From sequence record NC_034620.1: a DNA stretch of 36,391 nt, one strand, 5' to 3'. Numbering within the stretch: position 1 is the first letter of the stretch; the number at the start of each line of letters is the position of its first letter. Positions 9,804-26,759 of this stretch are shown piece by piece. The notes beneath the pieces are model-generated. The model was not told the DNA's origin. It did no database searches and worked only from the letters and a program-made list of their open reading frames with translations. A program made the position numbers and the translations under genes.

Positions 9804-9921
9804 ATTTTAAATTTCATGATCTGACAATTTAATAGTTTTTTTAAAAATAGAAGATAGTATATTAGATGATTAATAATTCTCTTAATTATTGTAGTATTTT
9901 AGTTTAAAATCTTGTCAACTC

Positions 9922-10001
9922 ATATACATAATATAATGTATATAGCTTTGGTTTTGAATTTTACGCCAATTTCATCAACTTATATACATTATATAGTATA
10001 T
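9922..10001 (+). promoter_or_regulatory. Two palindromic upstream sites of the capsid promoter
   Basis: ATATACAT-AATATA-ATGTATAT (9922-9943) and ATATACAT-TATA-TAGTATAT (9982-10001), both preceded by TCAACT, 60 bp apart. Confidence 0.7.
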
Positions 10002-10051
10002 ACGGCGTGAAAATTTATATTGTAGCAATTTTAAATATTAATTGACCAAAA

Positions 10052-15860: not shown

Positions 15861-15994
15861 AATTATTATATTTGTAAAAGTCAAAATAAAAACTTAATTC
15901 TAATATACAATATAATGTATATCAGTTTTACTCTTTGATCTCATCATATTCAATTCATAAAATATATATTTGTCATATTTTGAGTTACAAATAT

Positions 15995-16729: not shown

Positions 16730-16801
16730 ATATCATCAATATAAAAATTTTTATATGACAAATTTAAACATATATATGTCATAATTTTTAAGTTTAATTT
16801 G

Positions 16802-17185
16802 ATGAATTTTAGACAATCTGGAAAATATTATGAATATAAGACACTTAATTATCTTGAAAAACATGGATACAAAGCTATAAGAATTCCAGTTTCTGGAACT
16901 GGAAAACAGCCAATTCCAGATATTATAGCAACTAAGGATAATACAATTTTTCCAATTGAAGTTAAATCAACTTCACAAAATTATGTTGTAGTTGATAATT
17001 TTCAAATTGATAAATTGTTTAAGTTCTGTGAGATATTCAATTTTTGTAATTGTAAACCGTTAATACTAGTTCATTATAAAAAATATAAAAATGTCATAAT
17101 ATATAATTTGAGTCAAGATGTCAGAACAAAAGAAAAAATCAAATTTACCTTCAGAGCTAACAGCAAAACTGTATTTAGCACTTGA
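16802..17185 (+). CDS. hjc: Holliday junction resolvase (Hjc family)
   Basis: GKYYE...GYKAIRIPVSG...PDIIA...IEVKS PD-(D/E)XK motifs. Confidence 0.95.
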   Translation: MNFRQSGKYYEYKTLNYLEKHGYKAIRIPVSGTGKQPIPDIIATKDNTIFPIEVKSTSQNYVVVDNFQIDKLFKFCEIFNFCNCKPLILVHYKKYKNVIIYNLSQDVRTKEKIKFTFRANSKTVFST

Positions 17186-17741: not shown

Positions 17742-20700
17742 ATGAGTTTCTTATTAAATCTTGGAGATTTAGGTACATTTTTTTCAGATGAGCTAACAGC
17801 ATTAGAGAATTTTGCAAATTTCTTAAGCTCTGATTTTATAAACTTTTTTAGTGCAGTAGTTAATGATATTGAAAATGTTGTAAGTTTCATAGGTCAGGCA
17901 ATTAGTGATATTCCAACTTTTATGCAAAAAATTGCTAACAATTTCTTGACGATTTTGCAAAACTTTGTACAAACTGCAATTCCAGTAGTTTCAGGATTTT
18001 TAACATTTCTTGAACAACAAATTATAAATGTATTTCAAGATTTGTCTTCTTTAGCTTCTACATTTATAAATGATGCATATTCATTTTTACAAGGTGTTGT
18101 AAATGCATTTGCAAATTTAATAAGTACAATAGTTCAAGATTTTCTAAATAATTTTGGTCAAAATATGAAACATATTAGTTCTGCAATTTCTCAAGTTACT
18201 CAATTTTTAACTCCATTTATCGCTCCAGTCACTTTAGGAAAATTTTTGCCAGCAATAATAGATAAATTAGCTGAAATTTTGCCAGAAGTTGAAATTGATT
18301 TAGCGCCAGTTGGCTTAGGCGGAAAAATTCCAATTAACTTTGGAGAAATTGTAAAAGCGTTTGCTGAAACTTCAGTTGACTTTTTAAATGAAGTAAGAGT
18401 AGAAATACAAACTACGCTTAAGGAGTTTATAAAAGAGCCATTTATTTCAGATTTTAAAATTACTGCGAGAGAAATATTTAATGAAATTGGTCTTGGAGAT
18501 TTACCATTTGCAGATCCTCCATTTAGATTAATTGCAAATTGGGTCGGTTCAAGATCATTTTCTGAAATTAAAGACCATCTTAAAGAAACAATTCTATTGA
18601 CTGGATTTCCAGCATGGTTTACTGATGCTTATCTAGAATCTCCAGTTGATGATTTTATACCAAGAAATCCGTTATTTAGACCAGTAAATATAAGAGATGT
18701 AATTTTAGCTTCACAATATGGAATTTTAGACTTTAGTGCAGTTTCTCAATATGCAGAAAATAATTTAATAACTCCAAAAACTGCAAAATTAATGTATCAA
18801 AATGAGACTGCGAGACTTTTACAAAGAGCAGTTGAAGAGGGAATTAGACAATTTGTAGTTACTCCTGAAAAAGCTTATCAAGAAATAATACAAAATGTTA
18901 ATTTAGCTGGTAAAGATTTATATCTAAAAGTTTTCTCTCTTGAGTACAATTATTCAGTTCAAAGAATTGTTAGACAGTTTTTAAGATCACTTTTATCAAG
19001 AGCTTTAACTAATTTTGGAAGACCATACATTGATCTAAAATTCCTAGAATCAACAGTTCAAAAATTATTTAAAGAACTAAATTATCCTGAAGAAGTTCAA
19101 AATGTTTTCAACATAATGATTGAACAATCTCAAATAGTTTATACTAATCAATTACTTTTGACACAATTAGAACAACTTACCAGATTAGGAATATTTGACG
19201 AAAAGAAAGTAAAAGCAGAGTTAAAAGCTAATAACTTTAATGAACAGATAGCACTTACAATTTTGAATTATGAACTTCAATATGTACAATTACAATATAT
19301 CTTGAAACAATACCAATTCATGTTACAAAATTATATTATTAGTACAAAAGATGCAGAAAATCAATTAAAGAAATTAGGCTTTGATTCATCTATAATTTCT
19401 GAGATAATTTTTGAATATCAAACAGCTCCATTAACAAAATATCAAATTAGCCAAATTGAAAGTTTGGCTAGAAAAGGATATTTATCAGTTGATGAAATTA
19501 AAAAACAATTACATTCATTAGGCATAATTAAGGAATTTGAAGACATATTTATCAATTACACAAGTCAAGAAATTCAAATATCAACAACTTTAAGTATTGT
19601 AAAAGAACAATTAAGAAACTTCCTAATAGATTCGAAAACTGTAGAAAATGAATTAAAAGCATTAAAAATTAATGATTATTTAATAAATGAGATAATTCAA
19701 GAAGAATATAACATAAATATATCTAAATTACAATTATCATATTTAGAAACTTTAGCTAAGAATTTATATTATGATCAAAATCAATTAGCCGGAGAATTAG
19801 CAAAAATTCTAAAAGATAAAACTGCAATAGATCTTTATACTCAAAAATTCTATTATGAATATGTATTTCCAAAAATTGTCAGTTATCACGTTAGTTTAGC
19901 AAGACATGGAATTTCCTCAAATATTTCAAACTTGCCAAAAGAAATTGTAGATTATGAAATTAATCCAGAAATCCAAATTTTCCAACTTACAACAGAATTA
20001 GAATATATAAAATCATTATTAAAAGATTTACAAATAACTCCAACAAATGCTGAAAACGAGTTAATAAAATTAGGAATGCAAAAAGATTTAGCTAATTTAT
20101 TTGTGCAAACTTATATTCCAACACTTTACAGTTTACATACAATTATTGGAAATATTATAGAAGGTCAACTTTACAAAGTTGGAAAAATTCCAATTAATTT
20201 AGGAAATGCAGAAACGCAATTAAGACAATTAGGAATTCCAGAAAACCAAATAAAAATAATTATTGAACAATATGAATCTTCATTTGGCTTAGAAATTTGG
20301 AGAAAATACTTACCTTCACTTTCTCAAATTGAAACTGCAATAAAATATAACTTTCCAATTAACCAATTAGTTGAATATTCATTTATACCATCTGAATTTC
20401 TTAACTTATATTCTAATTTATATCAATATGAATTAATTGGACAATATGTACAATCTTTGAGAAATGAATATATTCAACTTCTCACTTATGGAGTTCAAAA
20501 TATACAATTAGAGAATTTGCTAAAACAATATGGAATAAATCAAGTCCTATTAGAAGTTTTCAAATTATCAGCACAAATTAGAAAATTATTAATGGCTTAT
20601 CAAGAACTTTACATCACTCCATCTAAAGCACTCACAATTAGCGAATATATTAGCAATCCAAATCAACTTTTACAAAAAGTATTTTCCGAATTTCAAGTAC

Positions 20701-20918
20701 CAACAGATTTACAAAATACTTACTTAGAATATGCAAGAAATAGGAGACTTAGAACGTACGTAAATGAAATAATTTCAACAATCAATTTGTTATTTGAAAG
20801 ACAAAAAATAGATCTAAATACGGCTCAACAATACTTACAACAATTAAAACAATATGGTTTAACAAATGAAGAAATTCAATTAATCTTACTTAACTGGCAA
20901 TTAAGAAGTAACTATTAA
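17742..20918 (+). CDS. Large virion terminal-fibre protein (SIRV2 ORF1070/gp38 type, 1058 aa)
   Basis: Largest ORF; N-terminal amphipathic/coiled region, repeated helical units; conserved position after hjc. Confidence 0.92.
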   Translation: MSFLLNLGDLGTFFSDELTALENFANFLSSDFINFFSAVVNDIENVVSFIGQAISDIPTFMQKIANNFLTILQNFVQTAIPVVSGFLTFLEQQIINVFQDLSSLASTFINDAYSFLQGVVNAFANLISTIVQDFLNNFGQNMKHISSAISQVTQFLTPFIAPVTLGKFLPAIIDKLAEILPEVEIDLAPVGLGGKIPINFGEIVKAFAETSVDFLNEVRVEIQTTLKEFIKEPFISDFKITAREIFNEIGLGDLPFADPPFRLIANWVGSRSFSEIKDHLKETILLTGFPAWFTDAYLESPVDDFIPRNPLFRPVNIRDVILASQYGILDFSAVSQYAENNLITPKTAKLMYQNETARLLQRAVEEGIRQFVVTPEKAYQEIIQNVNLAGKDLYLKVFSLEYNYSVQRIVRQFLRSLLSRALTNFGRPYIDLKFLESTVQKLFKELNYPEEVQNVFNIMIEQSQIVYTNQLLLTQLEQLTRLGIFDEKKVKAELKANNFNEQIALTILNYELQYVQLQYILKQYQFMLQNYIISTKDAENQLKKLGFDSSIISEIIFEYQTAPLTKYQISQIESLARKGYLSVDEIKKQLHSLGIIKEFEDIFINYTSQEIQISTTLSIVKEQLRNFLIDSKTVENELKALKINDYLINEIIQEEYNINISKLQLSYLETLAKNLYYDQNQLAGELAKILKDKTAIDLYTQKFYYEYVFPKIVSYHVSLARHGISSNISNLPKEIVDYEINPEIQIFQLTTELEYIKSLLKDLQITPTNAENELIKLGMQKDLANLFVQTYIPTLYSLHTIIGNIIEGQLYKVGKIPINLGNAETQLRQLGIPENQIKIIIEQYESSFGLEIWRKYLPSLSQIETAIKYNFPINQLVEYSFIPSEFLNLYSNLYQYELIGQYVQSLRNEYIQLLTYGVQNIQLENLLKQYGINQVLLEVFKLSAQIRKLLMAYQELYITPSKALTISEYISNPNQLLQKVFSEFQVPTDLQNTYLEYARNRRLRTYVNEIISTINLLFERQKIDLNTAQQYLQQLKQYGLTNEEIQLILLNWQLRSNY

Positions 20919-20961
20919 ACAACTAAATAAATAAATTTGTCACATTTTTAAACTAGAAATT

Positions 20962-21777
20962 ATGAGCGTTAATTTATGTCATTATGAGGCGGAAAATATA
21001 AGTTATAAAGATTTAGAAAATCTTCAAGGTATGATATATTATGAGATAAAATATGATGGAACACATATTTGTTTAAAGTATGAAAATGAACTAAAAATTA
21101 ATACTAGAAAAGATATACCTCATGATAAAACATTTCAGAATTTGTTTTATCAAGTTCCAAATATTGATGAAATTATAAAATATATAAAAGAACATAACAA
21201 TTATATAATACATGGGGAACTTATACATAAAAAGACATCAGCATTACAGATTCACAAAAATGAAACTCCAGAATTTATAATTTATGATGTTTTTGATAAA
21301 GAAAATAATAGATATTTAAATCCATTTGAAGTTGATAGTGAAATTTACGAATGGTATCCAGAAATTTGTTTAGATTTAGATGATTTACTTGATATTATAA
21401 CTAAAGAAAAACTTGAGGGCTTAGTAGCTAAAATCTATAATCCGAAATTTGCAAATTGTGAAGAAGGCAGAAATTTTAACATGTGTCTTTTCAAATACAA
21501 ACCATATTTTTCAACTTTAGGAGTAATATTTAAACCAATTAGGAGAGAAATTGATGTTAGACAATTAGCGTTTCTTCTCGGCGAAATAGATAATGATTTA
21601 AAGAATAATAAAGATGAATGGTATAGAAATCATCCAGAACTTTACAAGTTCTTTATCGAAAATAAAGATAAAATAATACAGATACTACAAAACGAAAACT
21701 TCATATTACAAATTGAAGAAAATACACATTTAGACATTAAGAAAATTAAAGAATATATTACAAATTTCAAAAGATAA
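20962..21777 (+). CDS. ATP-dependent polynucleotide ligase-family nucleotidyltransferase, RNA-ligase-like (271 aa)
   Basis: Motif I EIKYDGT, Ia TRK, III IIHGEL, IIIa FIIYDVF, IV LEGLVAK, V LFKYK; no OB domain. Confidence 0.85.
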   Translation: MSVNLCHYEAENISYKDLENLQGMIYYEIKYDGTHICLKYENELKINTRKDIPHDKTFQNLFYQVPNIDEIIKYIKEHNNYIIHGELIHKKTSALQIHKNETPEFIIYDVFDKENNRYLNPFEVDSEIYEWYPEICLDLDDLLDIITKEKLEGLVAKIYNPKFANCEEGRNFNMCLFKYKPYFSTLGVIFKPIRREIDVRQLAFLLGEIDNDLKNNKDEWYRNHPELYKFFIENKDKIIQILQNENFILQIEENTHLDIKKIKEYITNFKR

Positions 21778-21796
21778 CAACATTTAGACCAAGCCA

Positions 21797-21816
21797 TATA
21801 CATAATATTATGTATA
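21797..21816. promoter_or_regulatory. Perfect 20-bp palindrome TATACATAATATTATGTATA upstream of the 566-aa virion gene
   Basis: Read directly; same family as sites at 9922, 9982, 13521, 15903 and 26670. Confidence 0.75.
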
Positions 21817-21858
21817 AGCTATGTGTGTTTATTTCTGTCAAGTTAATAATTTTTTCAT

Positions 21859-23559
21859 ATGAGCTTACCATACAAAGTACGTTTTAAGTTACCGTTAGAA
21901 TTTCTAACGTTACAAGACTGGAATAATTTTGTGCAAAATTTGTTATTTATAAATCAATATGGTTCAGCAAAGCTATTACAATATTATCAAAATGGGAATT
22001 TTCAAAATCTAAATGATGTAATTGCTGACTATTTATTTGTTTCAGCTTTAAAAGTAGCTGGATATAATGTTCTTCATAATTTATCACAACCACAAGCTTA
22101 TACATTTGGGGAAGGAAAACAACAGCCATTTGAAAGCATGGCAAATAAACCAATAATTCAACTGAAGCCTGTAATATTTCCAATTCTAAATTTTCAGATA
22201 CAATTATCTAAAGTTAGTAAACAATTGCAATTATTAATTCCTAAACTAACAAGTAAAATTATAACTCCAAACCAAATTGCTGGAACACAATTCCAATTTT
22301 CTGGGAGTGCAAATTTACAACAAATAACTTCACAATATTTAGATCCATCATATTTACAAACTTGGAGAGAAATAATAATACAAAATTTAGGCAGTTCTGC
22401 AGTTCAAATTAATAATTCTATCTATTTAATGCCTAAAAATTGTTTAAAGATAACTGTAAGTTCACCAAGTGAAATTCAATTAACCGCACAAACTCCAACT
22501 TTGCTAAGTGAAGAAATTGAATTTGTTGGAATTCCAATAACATTTTATACAATTACGATAACAAATTCACAGAGTGATCCAACTCCATCTCCATTCCAAC
22601 AATTACTTCAACTTAATCTTTCTTCAATTTTATCAAGTTCTAGTCAATTATTAAATTTAGAATTTTGTTTAGATTCACAATGTAATACTCCACTTTACGC
22701 ATGGATTGAAAGTTATACTTCTGATTTATCAAGTGTTTATATTTGGATTAATTTGCCAACTTCAATACCAGCAAATTCATCAATTACAATTTATATGTTT
22801 ATAAGAAATTCAATTCAATATCCTTATACTGGAATGAGACCAGATTTATCCGCGAGTTATGCACAATATGATAACGGAAAAAATATATTTTTAATTTATT
22901 TTAATGGCAATGAACCATTATCTAATTTTAATAATCAAGGAAATTCATTAACTCAAATATCTACAACCGGACCGTTAGGAAATACAATAAATGCAATTTA
23001 TATAAGTGGTTATAATTCACATTTTGGATTTGTATATACTGCTAAGTATATATCAAATCAAGCAGTAATTGCAGAATCATCAGTGATAGATCTAGGAAAT
23101 CAAACAGGTGGATTAAATGCAGATAATGGATTTTCTTCTATAGTTGATAGTACTTCAATTGGTAATTTAAATGCAATAAGTGTGGATATGGGGTATTCTG
23201 GTTCTTATTTTTCTAATGATTATTTTATAAGTGGAACTCAAACTTCTGATTTAAACCCAGCAGGAACTGCAGTATCACAGTGGCTTTATGCATGGGTCGT
23301 ATATTCTGGAACATCAAGTACTTCATGGTATGGATGTATAGCACCTCAACTTTATAGCTCAACTAATGGTTATTGTGGTACAGTTGGCAATAATCCATTT
23401 TCTAGTTCTTCTCAATTATATTTAGGTATAATTGGTAGTGTAAATTCTAGTTATCAGTGGCAAACTGCATGGAATTTTATGAGGTTAAGAGCTTATCCTC
23501 CAAATAACGTAATGCCTTCAAATTCTCAACCACAAAAGACAATAGTTCTAGTCACGTGA
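21859..23559 (+). CDS. Minor virion protein (SIRV2 ORF564 type) with DUF2341-like beta domain
   Basis: TITITNSQSDPTP...PLYAWIESY...IWINLPTSIPANSSITIYM pattern; S/T/N/G-rich C-terminal half. Confidence 0.87.
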   Translation: MSLPYKVRFKLPLEFLTLQDWNNFVQNLLFINQYGSAKLLQYYQNGNFQNLNDVIADYLFVSALKVAGYNVLHNLSQPQAYTFGEGKQQPFESMANKPIIQLKPVIFPILNFQIQLSKVSKQLQLLIPKLTSKIITPNQIAGTQFQFSGSANLQQITSQYLDPSYLQTWREIIIQNLGSSAVQINNSIYLMPKNCLKITVSSPSEIQLTAQTPTLLSEEIEFVGIPITFYTITITNSQSDPTPSPFQQLLQLNLSSILSSSSQLLNLEFCLDSQCNTPLYAWIESYTSDLSSVYIWINLPTSIPANSSITIYMFIRNSIQYPYTGMRPDLSASYAQYDNGKNIFLIYFNGNEPLSNFNNQGNSLTQISTTGPLGNTINAIYISGYNSHFGFVYTAKYISNQAVIAESSVIDLGNQTGGLNADNGFSSIVDSTSIGNLNAISVDMGYSGSYFSNDYFISGTQTSDLNPAGTAVSQWLYAWVVYSGTSSTSWYGCIAPQLYSSTNGYCGTVGNNPFSSSSQLYLGIIGSVNSSYQWQTAWNFMRLRAYPPNNVMPSNSQPQKTIVLVT

Positions 23560-26628: not shown

Positions 26629-26759
26629 ATGTTTATATACTTAAATTGTAGTAAAAATAAACTCATAACTTATATATCATATTATGTATATCACTTGATC
26701 TAATTGTCCTCGTTACGAATTAACAATATTTTAATTTGTCATGAACTGGAAAAATAATT

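Follow-up and report, generated by a model that had tools for sequence, protein, structure and literature searches.

A predicted compact RNA-ligase-like nucleotidyltransferase encoded between two virion genes of the Yellowstone rod-shaped virus SIRV9

ATP-dependent ligases require a 5'-phosphate (5'-P) and a 3'-hydroxyl (3'-OH) end; ends with a 5'-hydroxyl (5'-OH) are unusable to them without a kinase and a phosphatase. T4 Rnl1 (gp63), a viral RNA ligase that works with Pnkp, forms with it a tRNA-repair counter-defence. The Rnl2 family (T4 RNA ligase 2 and the kinetoplastid editing ligases; Pfam PF09414) has an N-terminal adenylyltransferase domain followed by an all-helical C-terminal domain of about 90 amino acids (aa). 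Enzymes of the Rnl3 family (Pab1020, MthRnl and Palaeococcus pacificus Rnl; TIGR01209) are archaeal, thermophilic homodimers, measure about 380 aa and have a four-domain plan with extra N-terminal and dimerisation domains, and those of the Rnl5 family (Naegleria gruberi, Deinococcus radiodurans) carry an extra, OB-like domain N-terminal to the adenylyltransferase domain and end at motif V. As far as we are aware, viruses of Crenarchaeota have yielded no described ligase. Here we analyse a candidate, ORF41 of Sulfolobus islandicus rod-shaped virus 9 (SIRV9), a Usarudivirus from Norris Geyser Basin, Yellowstone; the window is its full 36,391-bp record (KY744228 / NC_034620, 100% match). On balance, sequence comparison and modelling suggest that the product of ORF41 is probably a compact polynucleotide ligase, dependent on ATP and belonging to the RNA ligases among the covalent nucleotidyltransferases, with RNA as its substrate, and that the gene is accessory.

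ORF41 is the sole long open reading frame (ORF) within positions 20919-21796, where the antisense ORFs are 45 and 53 aa long. The gene and the parts of its product are as follows.

20962 to 21777, plus strand: ORF41, predicted RNA-ligase-like nucleotidyltransferase of 271 aa with an ATG start (GenBank ARQ96389.1, "hypothetical protein")
20962 to 21501, plus strand: predicted adenylyltransferase domain, residues 1-180, with motifs I, Ia, III, IIIa, IV and V, placed by Pfam, fold and profile matches
21049 to 21051, plus strand: codon of K30 in motif I (KYDG), the lysine predicted to accept AMP, invariant in 35 homologues
21502 to 21774, plus strand: predicted C-terminal all-helical domain, residues 181-271 (helices at 181-267 in the AlphaFold2 model)

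Hypothetical in GenBank, the gene is placed by PHROGs in phrog_12949, "unknown function", and the automatic UniProt name for the family is already "RNA ligase domain-containing protein". The paper describing SIRV4 to SIRV11 does not mention it and reports no ligase among the variable genes (PMC5454432), the published ligases of thermophilic viruses were limited to Rnl1 of bacteriophages in a 2023 review (PMC10423840), and our literature searches found no publication on a rudivirus ligase.

The protein displays the features by which the covalent nucleotidyltransferase superfamily is recognized, namely motifs I, III, IIIa, IV and V in order and a conserved motif I lysine. Motif I reads K30-Y-D-G-T-H, motif Ia T48-R49, motif III H84-G-E86-L, motif IIIa Y108-D109, motif IV E152-G-L-V-A-K157 and motif V K178-Y-K180. 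All six are ordered within residues 30-180, as had been proposed in an earlier reading of the DNA letters (the sequence-only reading), and they are invariant or nearly so across 20 aligned family members. In a wider alignment of 35 homologues, which comprises the viral family and two more distant groups, including remote PF09414 proteins, the only invariant columns are K30, G33, E86, D109, E152, G153 and K157; D32, K178, K180 and H224 are conserved in at least 90% of the sequences. The sixth position of motif I lacks the arginine of DNA ligases (KxDGxR), a feature that the same reading had singled out, and the aligned Rnl3 and Rnl5 chains (KVDGYN, KLDGSS) lack it too. In the profile, the K30 column coincides with the lysine of motif I in both P. 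pacificus Rnl3 and Naegleria Rnl5; we took these lysines to be the ones changed in the K92A and K170A/M entries, allowing for numbering offsets of the constructs.

Searches with family models agreed with an RNA-ligase-type nucleotidyltransferase. PF09414 (RNA_ligase) matched residues 27-167 over model positions 5-162 of 171 with 43.2 bits, above the gathering cut-off of 27. The DNA-ligase model PF01068 (DNA_ligase_A_M) matched residues 16-91 only, with 29.3 bits at a cut-off of 26.2, and no OB (oligonucleotide/oligosaccharide-binding) domain was matched in Pfam. The sequence-only reading had proposed these two models and that of Pab1020 as a check: the first passed, the second was partial, and the Pab1020 model, TIGR01209, gave no match at E values up to 10. 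The model of T4 RnlA, TIGR02308, gave no match either, and the NCBIfam scan returned only short, sub-threshold DNA-ligase matches (TIGR00574, 20.3 bits vs 217.8; TIGR02779, 22.3 vs 227.75). When the 35-sequence profile was compared with the PDB, RNA ligases came out on top (P. pacificus Rnl3, 1.2e-10; Naegleria Rnl5, 2.2e-10; Pab1020, 3.9e-8; T4 Rnl2, 1.3e-5), and DNA ligase 1 reached just 3e-4, over motifs I-Ia only.

Structure prediction gave a similar picture. An AlphaFold2 model built from 20 close sequences was poor, with a predicted local distance difference test score (pLDDT) of 71 and low values across motifs IV-V. With the 35-sequence alignment, the pLDDT rose to 90.7, with a predicted template-modelling (TM) score of 0.77. 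In this model, an adenylyltransferase core of mixed alpha/beta structure extends to about residue 180 and gives way to six helices (181-267); neither an OB fold nor motif VI is present, and residues 181-271 are all-helical, which bears out the expectation of about 90 aa of helical sequence in place of an OB fold. In a Foldseek search of the PDB, Pab1020 (Rnl3; 3.3e-8) and T4 Rnl1 (5.3e-8) led, followed by MthRnl, P. pacificus Rnl and an Aquifex homologue, and then by Trl1, Naegleria Rnl5 and T4 Rnl2; the earlier, poorer model produced the identical order. All of the neighbours were polynucleotide ligases, and no capping enzyme was found among the top 50. Foldseek against BFVD placed the SIRV11 orthologue first (TM-score 0.95; UniProt "RNA ligase domain-containing protein") and viral RNA ligases next.

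In the C-terminal domain, the block FLLGEIDNDLK..K..W..NH (residues 204-224) is almost invariant, and the domain is common to a chromosomal protein family of Sulfolobales and to remote PF09414 proteins. As a sole query against the PDB and Pfam it gave chance-level matches only; by this measure, it is a domain undescribed at the sequence level. ORF41 defines a small clade of minimal (271 aa) RNA-ligase-like enzymes with an undescribed C-terminal domain, shared with an unannotated family of Sulfolobales.

The sequence-only reading had likened ORF41 to Rnl2, Rnl3 and Rnl5. The comparison with Rnl2 held for the order of the domains and the helical nature of the C-terminal one, but not for Rnl5, whose extra domain is N-terminal, nor for Rnl3, with its extra N-terminal and dimerisation domains. 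Rnl3 enzymes nevertheless give the best profile and fold matches and, like ORF41, combine an archaeal, thermophilic setting with a motif I of the type KxDGxN/H without arginine, no OB fold, and helices after the nucleotidyltransferase core. ORF41 is about 110 residues shorter and lacks their N-terminal domain, motif I being found already at residue 30. Its remote relatives reach 37 bits at best with TIGR01209, for which the cut-off is 136.9, and the C-terminal domain of Rnl3 has no detectable homology to that of ORF41; the TM-score of the fold match is only about 0.45-0.5. The profile alignment with Rnl2 (E 1.3e-5) ends near the end of the adenylyltransferase domain, and the C-terminal domain alone matched nothing in the PDB or Pfam, Rnl2 included. 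Rnl5 matches in the adenylyltransferase domain (2.2e-10) and in motif spacing, but its domain order is the reverse.

Like ORF41, Rnl1 is a viral RNA ligase, and T4 Rnl1 was the second-best fold match. However, SIRV9 has no Pnkp among the Pfam families listed for it, ORF41 does not match TIGR02308, and the C-terminal domains differ; T4 gp63 is also linked to fibre attachment, as the names of the BFVD matches indicate. DNA ligases (PF01068 plus an OB fold) belong to the same superfamily, and their motifs I to III align with those of ORF41, which lacks the OB fold, motif VI and the KxDGxR arginine and matches their models only partially (20-22 bits vs >217). Because ORF41 failed the tests for Rnl1, Rnl3, Rnl5 and DNA ligases, we filed it and its Sulfolobales relatives, on sequence and model comparisons, as a putative separate variant of the RNA-ligase kind.

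Several observations weigh against an RNA ligase. The profile that ranked RNA ligases first contained remote PF09414 members; the profile of the viral family alone and a single-sequence phmmer search found nothing significant in the PDB, and known ligases were reached by the wider alignment only. In the Foldseek list, T4 DNA ligase appears at rank 16 (4.7e-7), which leaves a gap of about one order of magnitude between RNA and DNA ligases, and TM-scores of just 0.45-0.5 mean that essentially the nucleotidyltransferase core alone is matched. The protein is acidic (pI, isoelectric point, 5.4). Neither tRNA genes nor Rfam families were found in the window. The gene sits in a virion-gene module about 4 kb from a putative Hjc resolvase gene, a position also compatible with a role at DNA ends. 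Finally, when the remaining 57 annotated proteins of SIRV9 were scanned against Pfam, 35 families were matched, and the 25 listed include glycosyltransferases, ribbon-helix-helix and helix-turn-helix regulators, a Cas4/PD-(D/E)XK nuclease, Rep, the coat protein and DUF2341, and no polynucleotide kinase, phosphatase, 2H/LigT, HD or RtcB protein. At the level of these listed families, the earlier remark that no Pnk or phosphatase partner is visible was therefore upheld.

If ORF41 acts as its family does, K30 would attack ATP to form a ligase-AMP intermediate, the AMP would be transferred to a 5'-phosphate end, and a 3'-OH would attack the activated end to close the phosphodiester bond. The family-specific helical C-terminal domain would take the place of the OB fold and presumably holds the substrate, which would most likely be single-stranded or looped RNA bearing 5'-P and 3'-OH ends. 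Cellular or viral RNA could in this way be rejoined or circularised in the infected cell. ORF41, expressed from its own promoter, would supply an activity for which the searches turned up no counterpart in the host species. Coming from a virus whose host is an acidophile of hot springs, such a ligase could also be of use as a laboratory enzyme.

Four cysteines of ORF41, C6, C37, C166 and C175, are invariant in the viral family and missing from the chromosomal homologues of Sulfolobales. C166 and C175 stand on either side of a loop, the conserved CxEGxNFNxC, which is located between motifs IV and V. These cysteines may form disulfides or a metal site.

The surroundings of ORF41 in SIRV9 are the following.

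17742 to 20918, plus strand: ORF40, 1058 aa, minor capsid / terminal-fibre protein, homologue of SIRV2 ORF1070
20919 to 20961, plus strand: 43-nt spacer with the predicted ORF41 promoter; left indel edge in comparison with V3, V65 and SIRV2
21778 to 21858, plus strand: spacer ahead of ORF42, kept in genomes without ORF41, with a palindrome and the ORF42 TATA/GTC box
21859 to 23559, plus strand: ORF42, 566-aa DUF2341 structural protein, a core rudivirus gene, homologue of SIRV2 ORF564

A tblastn search with ORF41 against 50,697 phage and archaeal-virus records found it in Yellowstone SIRVs only (SIRV4 to SIRV11 and isolate V60). No homologue was detected by this search in SIRV1, SIRV2 or any non-Yellowstone rudivirus, in line with the earlier remark that no ligase is known from the SIRV1 and SIRV2 gene sets, and the gene is accessory rather than core. 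ORF42, unlike ORF41, has homologues in all rudivirus genera. ORF40 homologues, annotated "minor capsid protein" in related records, lie immediately upstream of the ligase-like gene in every related locus. All 16 IMG/VR loci and the metagenome contigs examined hold an intact ORF with motif I IKYDGTH at the same position, between an upstream frame of about 1060 aa and a downstream frame of 570-590 aa. In 12 of the 16, ATAAATTTGTCAT follows directly on the upstream stop codon and the ATG lies 31 nt from that stop.

The description of ORF41 as a self-contained insert between virion genes was confirmed by genomes that join the flanks directly. In SIRV2, ORF564 comes directly after ORF1070, and in V3 and V65, both isolates from Yellowstone, the ORF40 and ORF42 homologues are linked by a spacer of 88 nt. 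Since this spacer matches SIRV9 from about 21786 on, the indel spans 20919 to about 21785, and its edges fall within about 10 nt of those first proposed. The occupied sites showed us none of the marks of a mobile element: neither flanking repeats, direct or inverted, that recur consistently nor a target-site duplication. Both flanking-gene trees put V3 within the gene-bearing clade. In that of ORF40, with SIRV2 as the outgroup, V3 pairs with V60 (support 94/95), and the pair belongs to a clade supported at 98/96; in that of ORF42, V3 joins SIRV9 and V60 (100/100), with two gene-bearing contigs outside. The simplest history is a single gain in the Usarudivirus (Yellowstone) lineage followed by a recent, clean deletion in V3 and V65. 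Because this deletion lies within a gene-bearing clade, ORF41 is dispensable for growth in culture.

The pairwise ratio of nonsynonymous to synonymous substitution rates (dN/dS) of ORF41 was 0.13-0.17 among SIRV9, V60 and two metagenomic copies, which equals that of ORF40 (0.16) and is below that of ORF42 (0.20-0.40). By this sequence measure the gene is under strong purifying selection and in use. Since gene-bearing natural isolates (V60, SIRV8, SIRV9) are at hand beside others that lack it (V3, V65), in a genetically tractable host, a role in virus-host conflict can be tested directly.

ORF41 appears to have its own promoter, as had been predicted, and the element recurs in the genome. It and a second element found downstream of the gene are given below.

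20932 to 20942, plus strand: TATA-like box and GTC, TAAATTTGTCA, with the GTC 23 nt upstream of the ORF41 ATG
21795 to 21818: palindrome TACATAATATTATGTA; also at 9921-10004, 15900-15919 and 26669-26688; it precedes ORF42, ORF24, ORF36 and ORF45

Reportedly, SIRV1 and SIRV2 promoters have a TATA-like box followed by GTC, an arrangement ascribed to Kessler et al. 2004. About 20 other SIRV9 ORFs have an A/T-rich box and then GTC 21-38 nt upstream of the start codon; the pattern has 42 occurrences where 21.8 are expected, a count that none of the shuffles attained. The TAAATTTGTCA-type promoter of ORF41 is kept in related loci. With the GTC only 23 nt before the ATG, the sequence implies a transcript with little or no leader. 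ORF42 has its own TATA/GTC box, with the GTC 22 nt upstream of its ATG, and is also preceded by the palindrome, which corresponds to the late site that had been noticed after ORF41. The TACATAATATTATGTA element has 8 matches against 0.43 expected, and one of the genes that it precedes, ORF24, has the rudivirus coat-protein domain. It appears to be a regulatory site common to structural or late genes. The element is absent upstream of ORF41 and of ORF40, and ORF41 would therefore have a promoter of another type than that of its structural neighbours. A bacterial-type promoter and terminator scan of the window is uninformative for an archaeal virus.

A word-indexed search for relatives of ORF41 through 5.8 billion proteins yielded 37 clusters. 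Each is at least 66% identical and 248-279 aa long (nearly all 270-272), and most stem from short metagenome contigs. An exhaustive hidden Markov model (HMM) search of 1.84 billion cluster representatives found just 17 proteins at E <= 1e-3. The nearest outgroup, which contains the only full-length relatives found (25-29% identity), is a chromosomal family of about 320 aa in Sulfolobales, with members in Stygiolobus caldivivus, Sulfurisphaera ohwakuensis, Metallosphaera javensis and a Thermoprotei metagenome-assembled genome. Its genes lie at these positions in the loci retrieved.

Locus L010, 10001 to 10963: chromosomal homologue
Locus L012, 10001 to 10945: chromosomal homologue
Locus L014, 5965 to 6939: chromosomal homologue
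Locus L015, 6001 to 6946: chromosomal homologue

In an hhalign comparison the viral and chromosomal families aligned with 98.3% probability (E 2.5e-14) over 231 columns spanning both domains. Like ORF41, the chromosomal proteins have the adenylyltransferase domain and the same C-terminal domain; unlike it, they have about 50 extra N-terminal residues and lack both the four viral cysteines and the motif Ia arginine. A reverse search with the Stygiolobus protein found, among viruses, Yellowstone SIRVs only. No member was found in S. islandicus or Saccharolobus by protein-cluster and homologue searches. The family has no functional name, and the members scanned (P0039 and the fragment P0051) had no Pfam match. 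The chromosomal genes stand alone among varying neighbours (major facilitator superfamily transporters, rml sugar-nucleotide genes, TrmO, a protease, insertion sequence elements), and no RNA-repair partner genes lie beside them in the four loci. Farther removed is a set of PF09414 proteins, 270-300 aa in length, that share the C-terminal domain of ORF41; for one of them, a tailed virus assigned to Methanofastidiosa encodes a full-length homologue at 31% identity.

Three further features of the chromosomal loci were observed. Genes of the rml sugar-nucleotide type lie near the homologue in three of the four loci, a HEPN/MNT pair is found about 1.2 kb upstream of it in Stygiolobus, and in the Thermoprotei genome the homologue appears split into two ORFs (101 and 173 aa).

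Among the alternative explanations of ORF41, the one that stands up best, though we think it unlikely, is counter-defence by damage reversal, a more specific form of the idea in the sequence-only reading: host or viral RNA cut by abortive-infection RNases, for example Csx1, an ancillary enzyme of type III CRISPR, or the toxins of toxin-antitoxin pairs, would be rejoined after host end healing, and in Yellowstone SIRVs the gene would substitute for the missing ring nuclease AcrIII-1. T4 Rnl1 with Pnkp offers a precedent, and an accessory, dispensable gene that has been lost in V3 and V65 would fit such a role, as would the failure of any ORF41 homologue from the host species to turn up. The distribution of DUF1874, which we take to be the AcrIII-1 ring-nuclease family of Athukoralage et al. 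2020, points the same way. By tblastn, DUF1874 is present in SIRV1, SIRV2, SIRV3, SRV, ARV2, STIV, SMV4, fuselloviruses and lipothrixviruses and in none of the Yellowstone SIRVs; it is also not among the families listed in the SIRV9 Pfam summary. Among S. islandicus rudiviruses the ligase-like gene and DUF1874 are thus complementary, and in SIRV2 the DUF1874 gene lies immediately upstream of ORF1070, the same fibre gene. However, phylogenetically this is one contrast only, and both genes are missing from V3 and V65.

The chemistry of the ends also speaks against damage reversal. HEPN and RelE-type cuts leave a 2',3'-cyclic phosphate and a 5'-OH, which an ATP-dependent ligase cannot use and which, as toxin-type ends, archaeal RtcB already joins. 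We considered whether VapC, a PIN-domain toxin, might leave directly ligatable 5'-P/3'-OH ends and rejected this, as its cleavage products are reported to carry 5'-OH ends (PMC6459853). No healing enzyme is among the SIRV9 Pfam families listed, and PADLOC gave no defence-system match for ORF41 or its cellular homologues. Since the cuts made by toxins and Csx1 leave 5'-OH, RNA repair would need end healing by the host, and this need, together with the presence of RtcB, weakens the case for counter-defence. It is doubtful that the ligase is a new type of anti-CRISPR or anti-abortive-infection device by which Yellowstone SIRVs, lacking a ring nuclease, reverse the damage of collateral RNases after host end healing. 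Icelandic SIRVs destroy the cyclic-oligoadenylate signal by means of DUF1874; Yellowstone SIRVs would, on this view, reverse the RNA damage instead.

A somewhat smaller chance belongs to DNA-end sealing, in which ORF41 would close 5'-P/3'-OH nicks left where a Holliday-junction resolvase or Rep has resolved replicative concatemers, restoring covalently closed hairpin ends, or would act on nicks in single-stranded or A-form viral DNA. The cuts of resolvases are directly ligatable, so a ligase alone would be enough, and single-stranded and A-form DNA would suit an enzyme of the RNA-ligase type. The putative Hjc gene lies about 4 kb upstream in the same conserved module, DNA ligases are just slightly weaker than RNA ligases in Foldseek, and PF01068 matches the ORF41 N-terminus. 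Thermophilic enzymes of the Rnl1 and Rnl3 types are moreover known to ligate single-stranded DNA (PMC10423840). Against this explanation, other rudiviruses as well as V3 and V65 all replicate without ORF41, the protein is without the OB fold and motif VI, and the sequence profile favours RNA over DNA ligases by about six orders of magnitude. The class of promoter to which that of ORF41 belongs is also not particular to replication genes.

That ORF41 is a nucleotidyltransferase acting on something else than a break in nucleic acid, or has become inactive as a remnant, is improbable. Its C-terminal domain is undescribed, the protein is acidic, and the arginine of motif Ia is not conserved in the cellular homologues; but the complete set of ligase motifs is invariant, purifying selection is strong, and the top 50 structural neighbours are polynucleotide ligases without a capping enzyme. 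Least probable, by a small margin, is a helper of virion assembly, as a sole or second function on the terminal fibres made from ORF40 in the manner of T4 gp63, for which the constant place of the gene between a fibre and a structural gene and BFVD neighbours named "RnlA RNA ligase and tail fiber attachment catalyst" might speak, but which is at odds with the strict conservation of the catalytic residues, which argues for enzymatic use, with the lack of the palindrome of structural-gene promoters, with cellular homologues that have no virion context, and with V3 and V65, which already suggest infectious particles without ORF41.

The putative Hjc gene is an ORF at 16799-17185 on the plus strand, 128 aa from a TTG with an ATG at codon 2. 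It is unannotated in KY744228 and overlaps the annotated start of ORF39. Its sequence resembles a Holliday-junction resolvase gene, and the gene at the same position in related contigs has the Pfam Hjc domain (PF01870).

Two further observations concern the right side of the locus. An exact 10-nt direct repeat, ACATTTAGAC, is found at 21726-21735 and 21780-21789, 54 nt apart, bracketing the ORF41 stop codon; it may be a product of chance in A/T-rich DNA. SIRV8 and SIRV9 DNA is 97.7% identical over 20500-22153 and their ORF41 proteins are 100% identical, but their ORF42 proteins share only 58% identity. This near-identity up to 22153 beside divergent ORF42 proteins indicates a likely recombination breakpoint about 300 nt into ORF42 (near 22150 of the window) and two deeply divergent ORF42 alleles among Yellowstone SIRVs.

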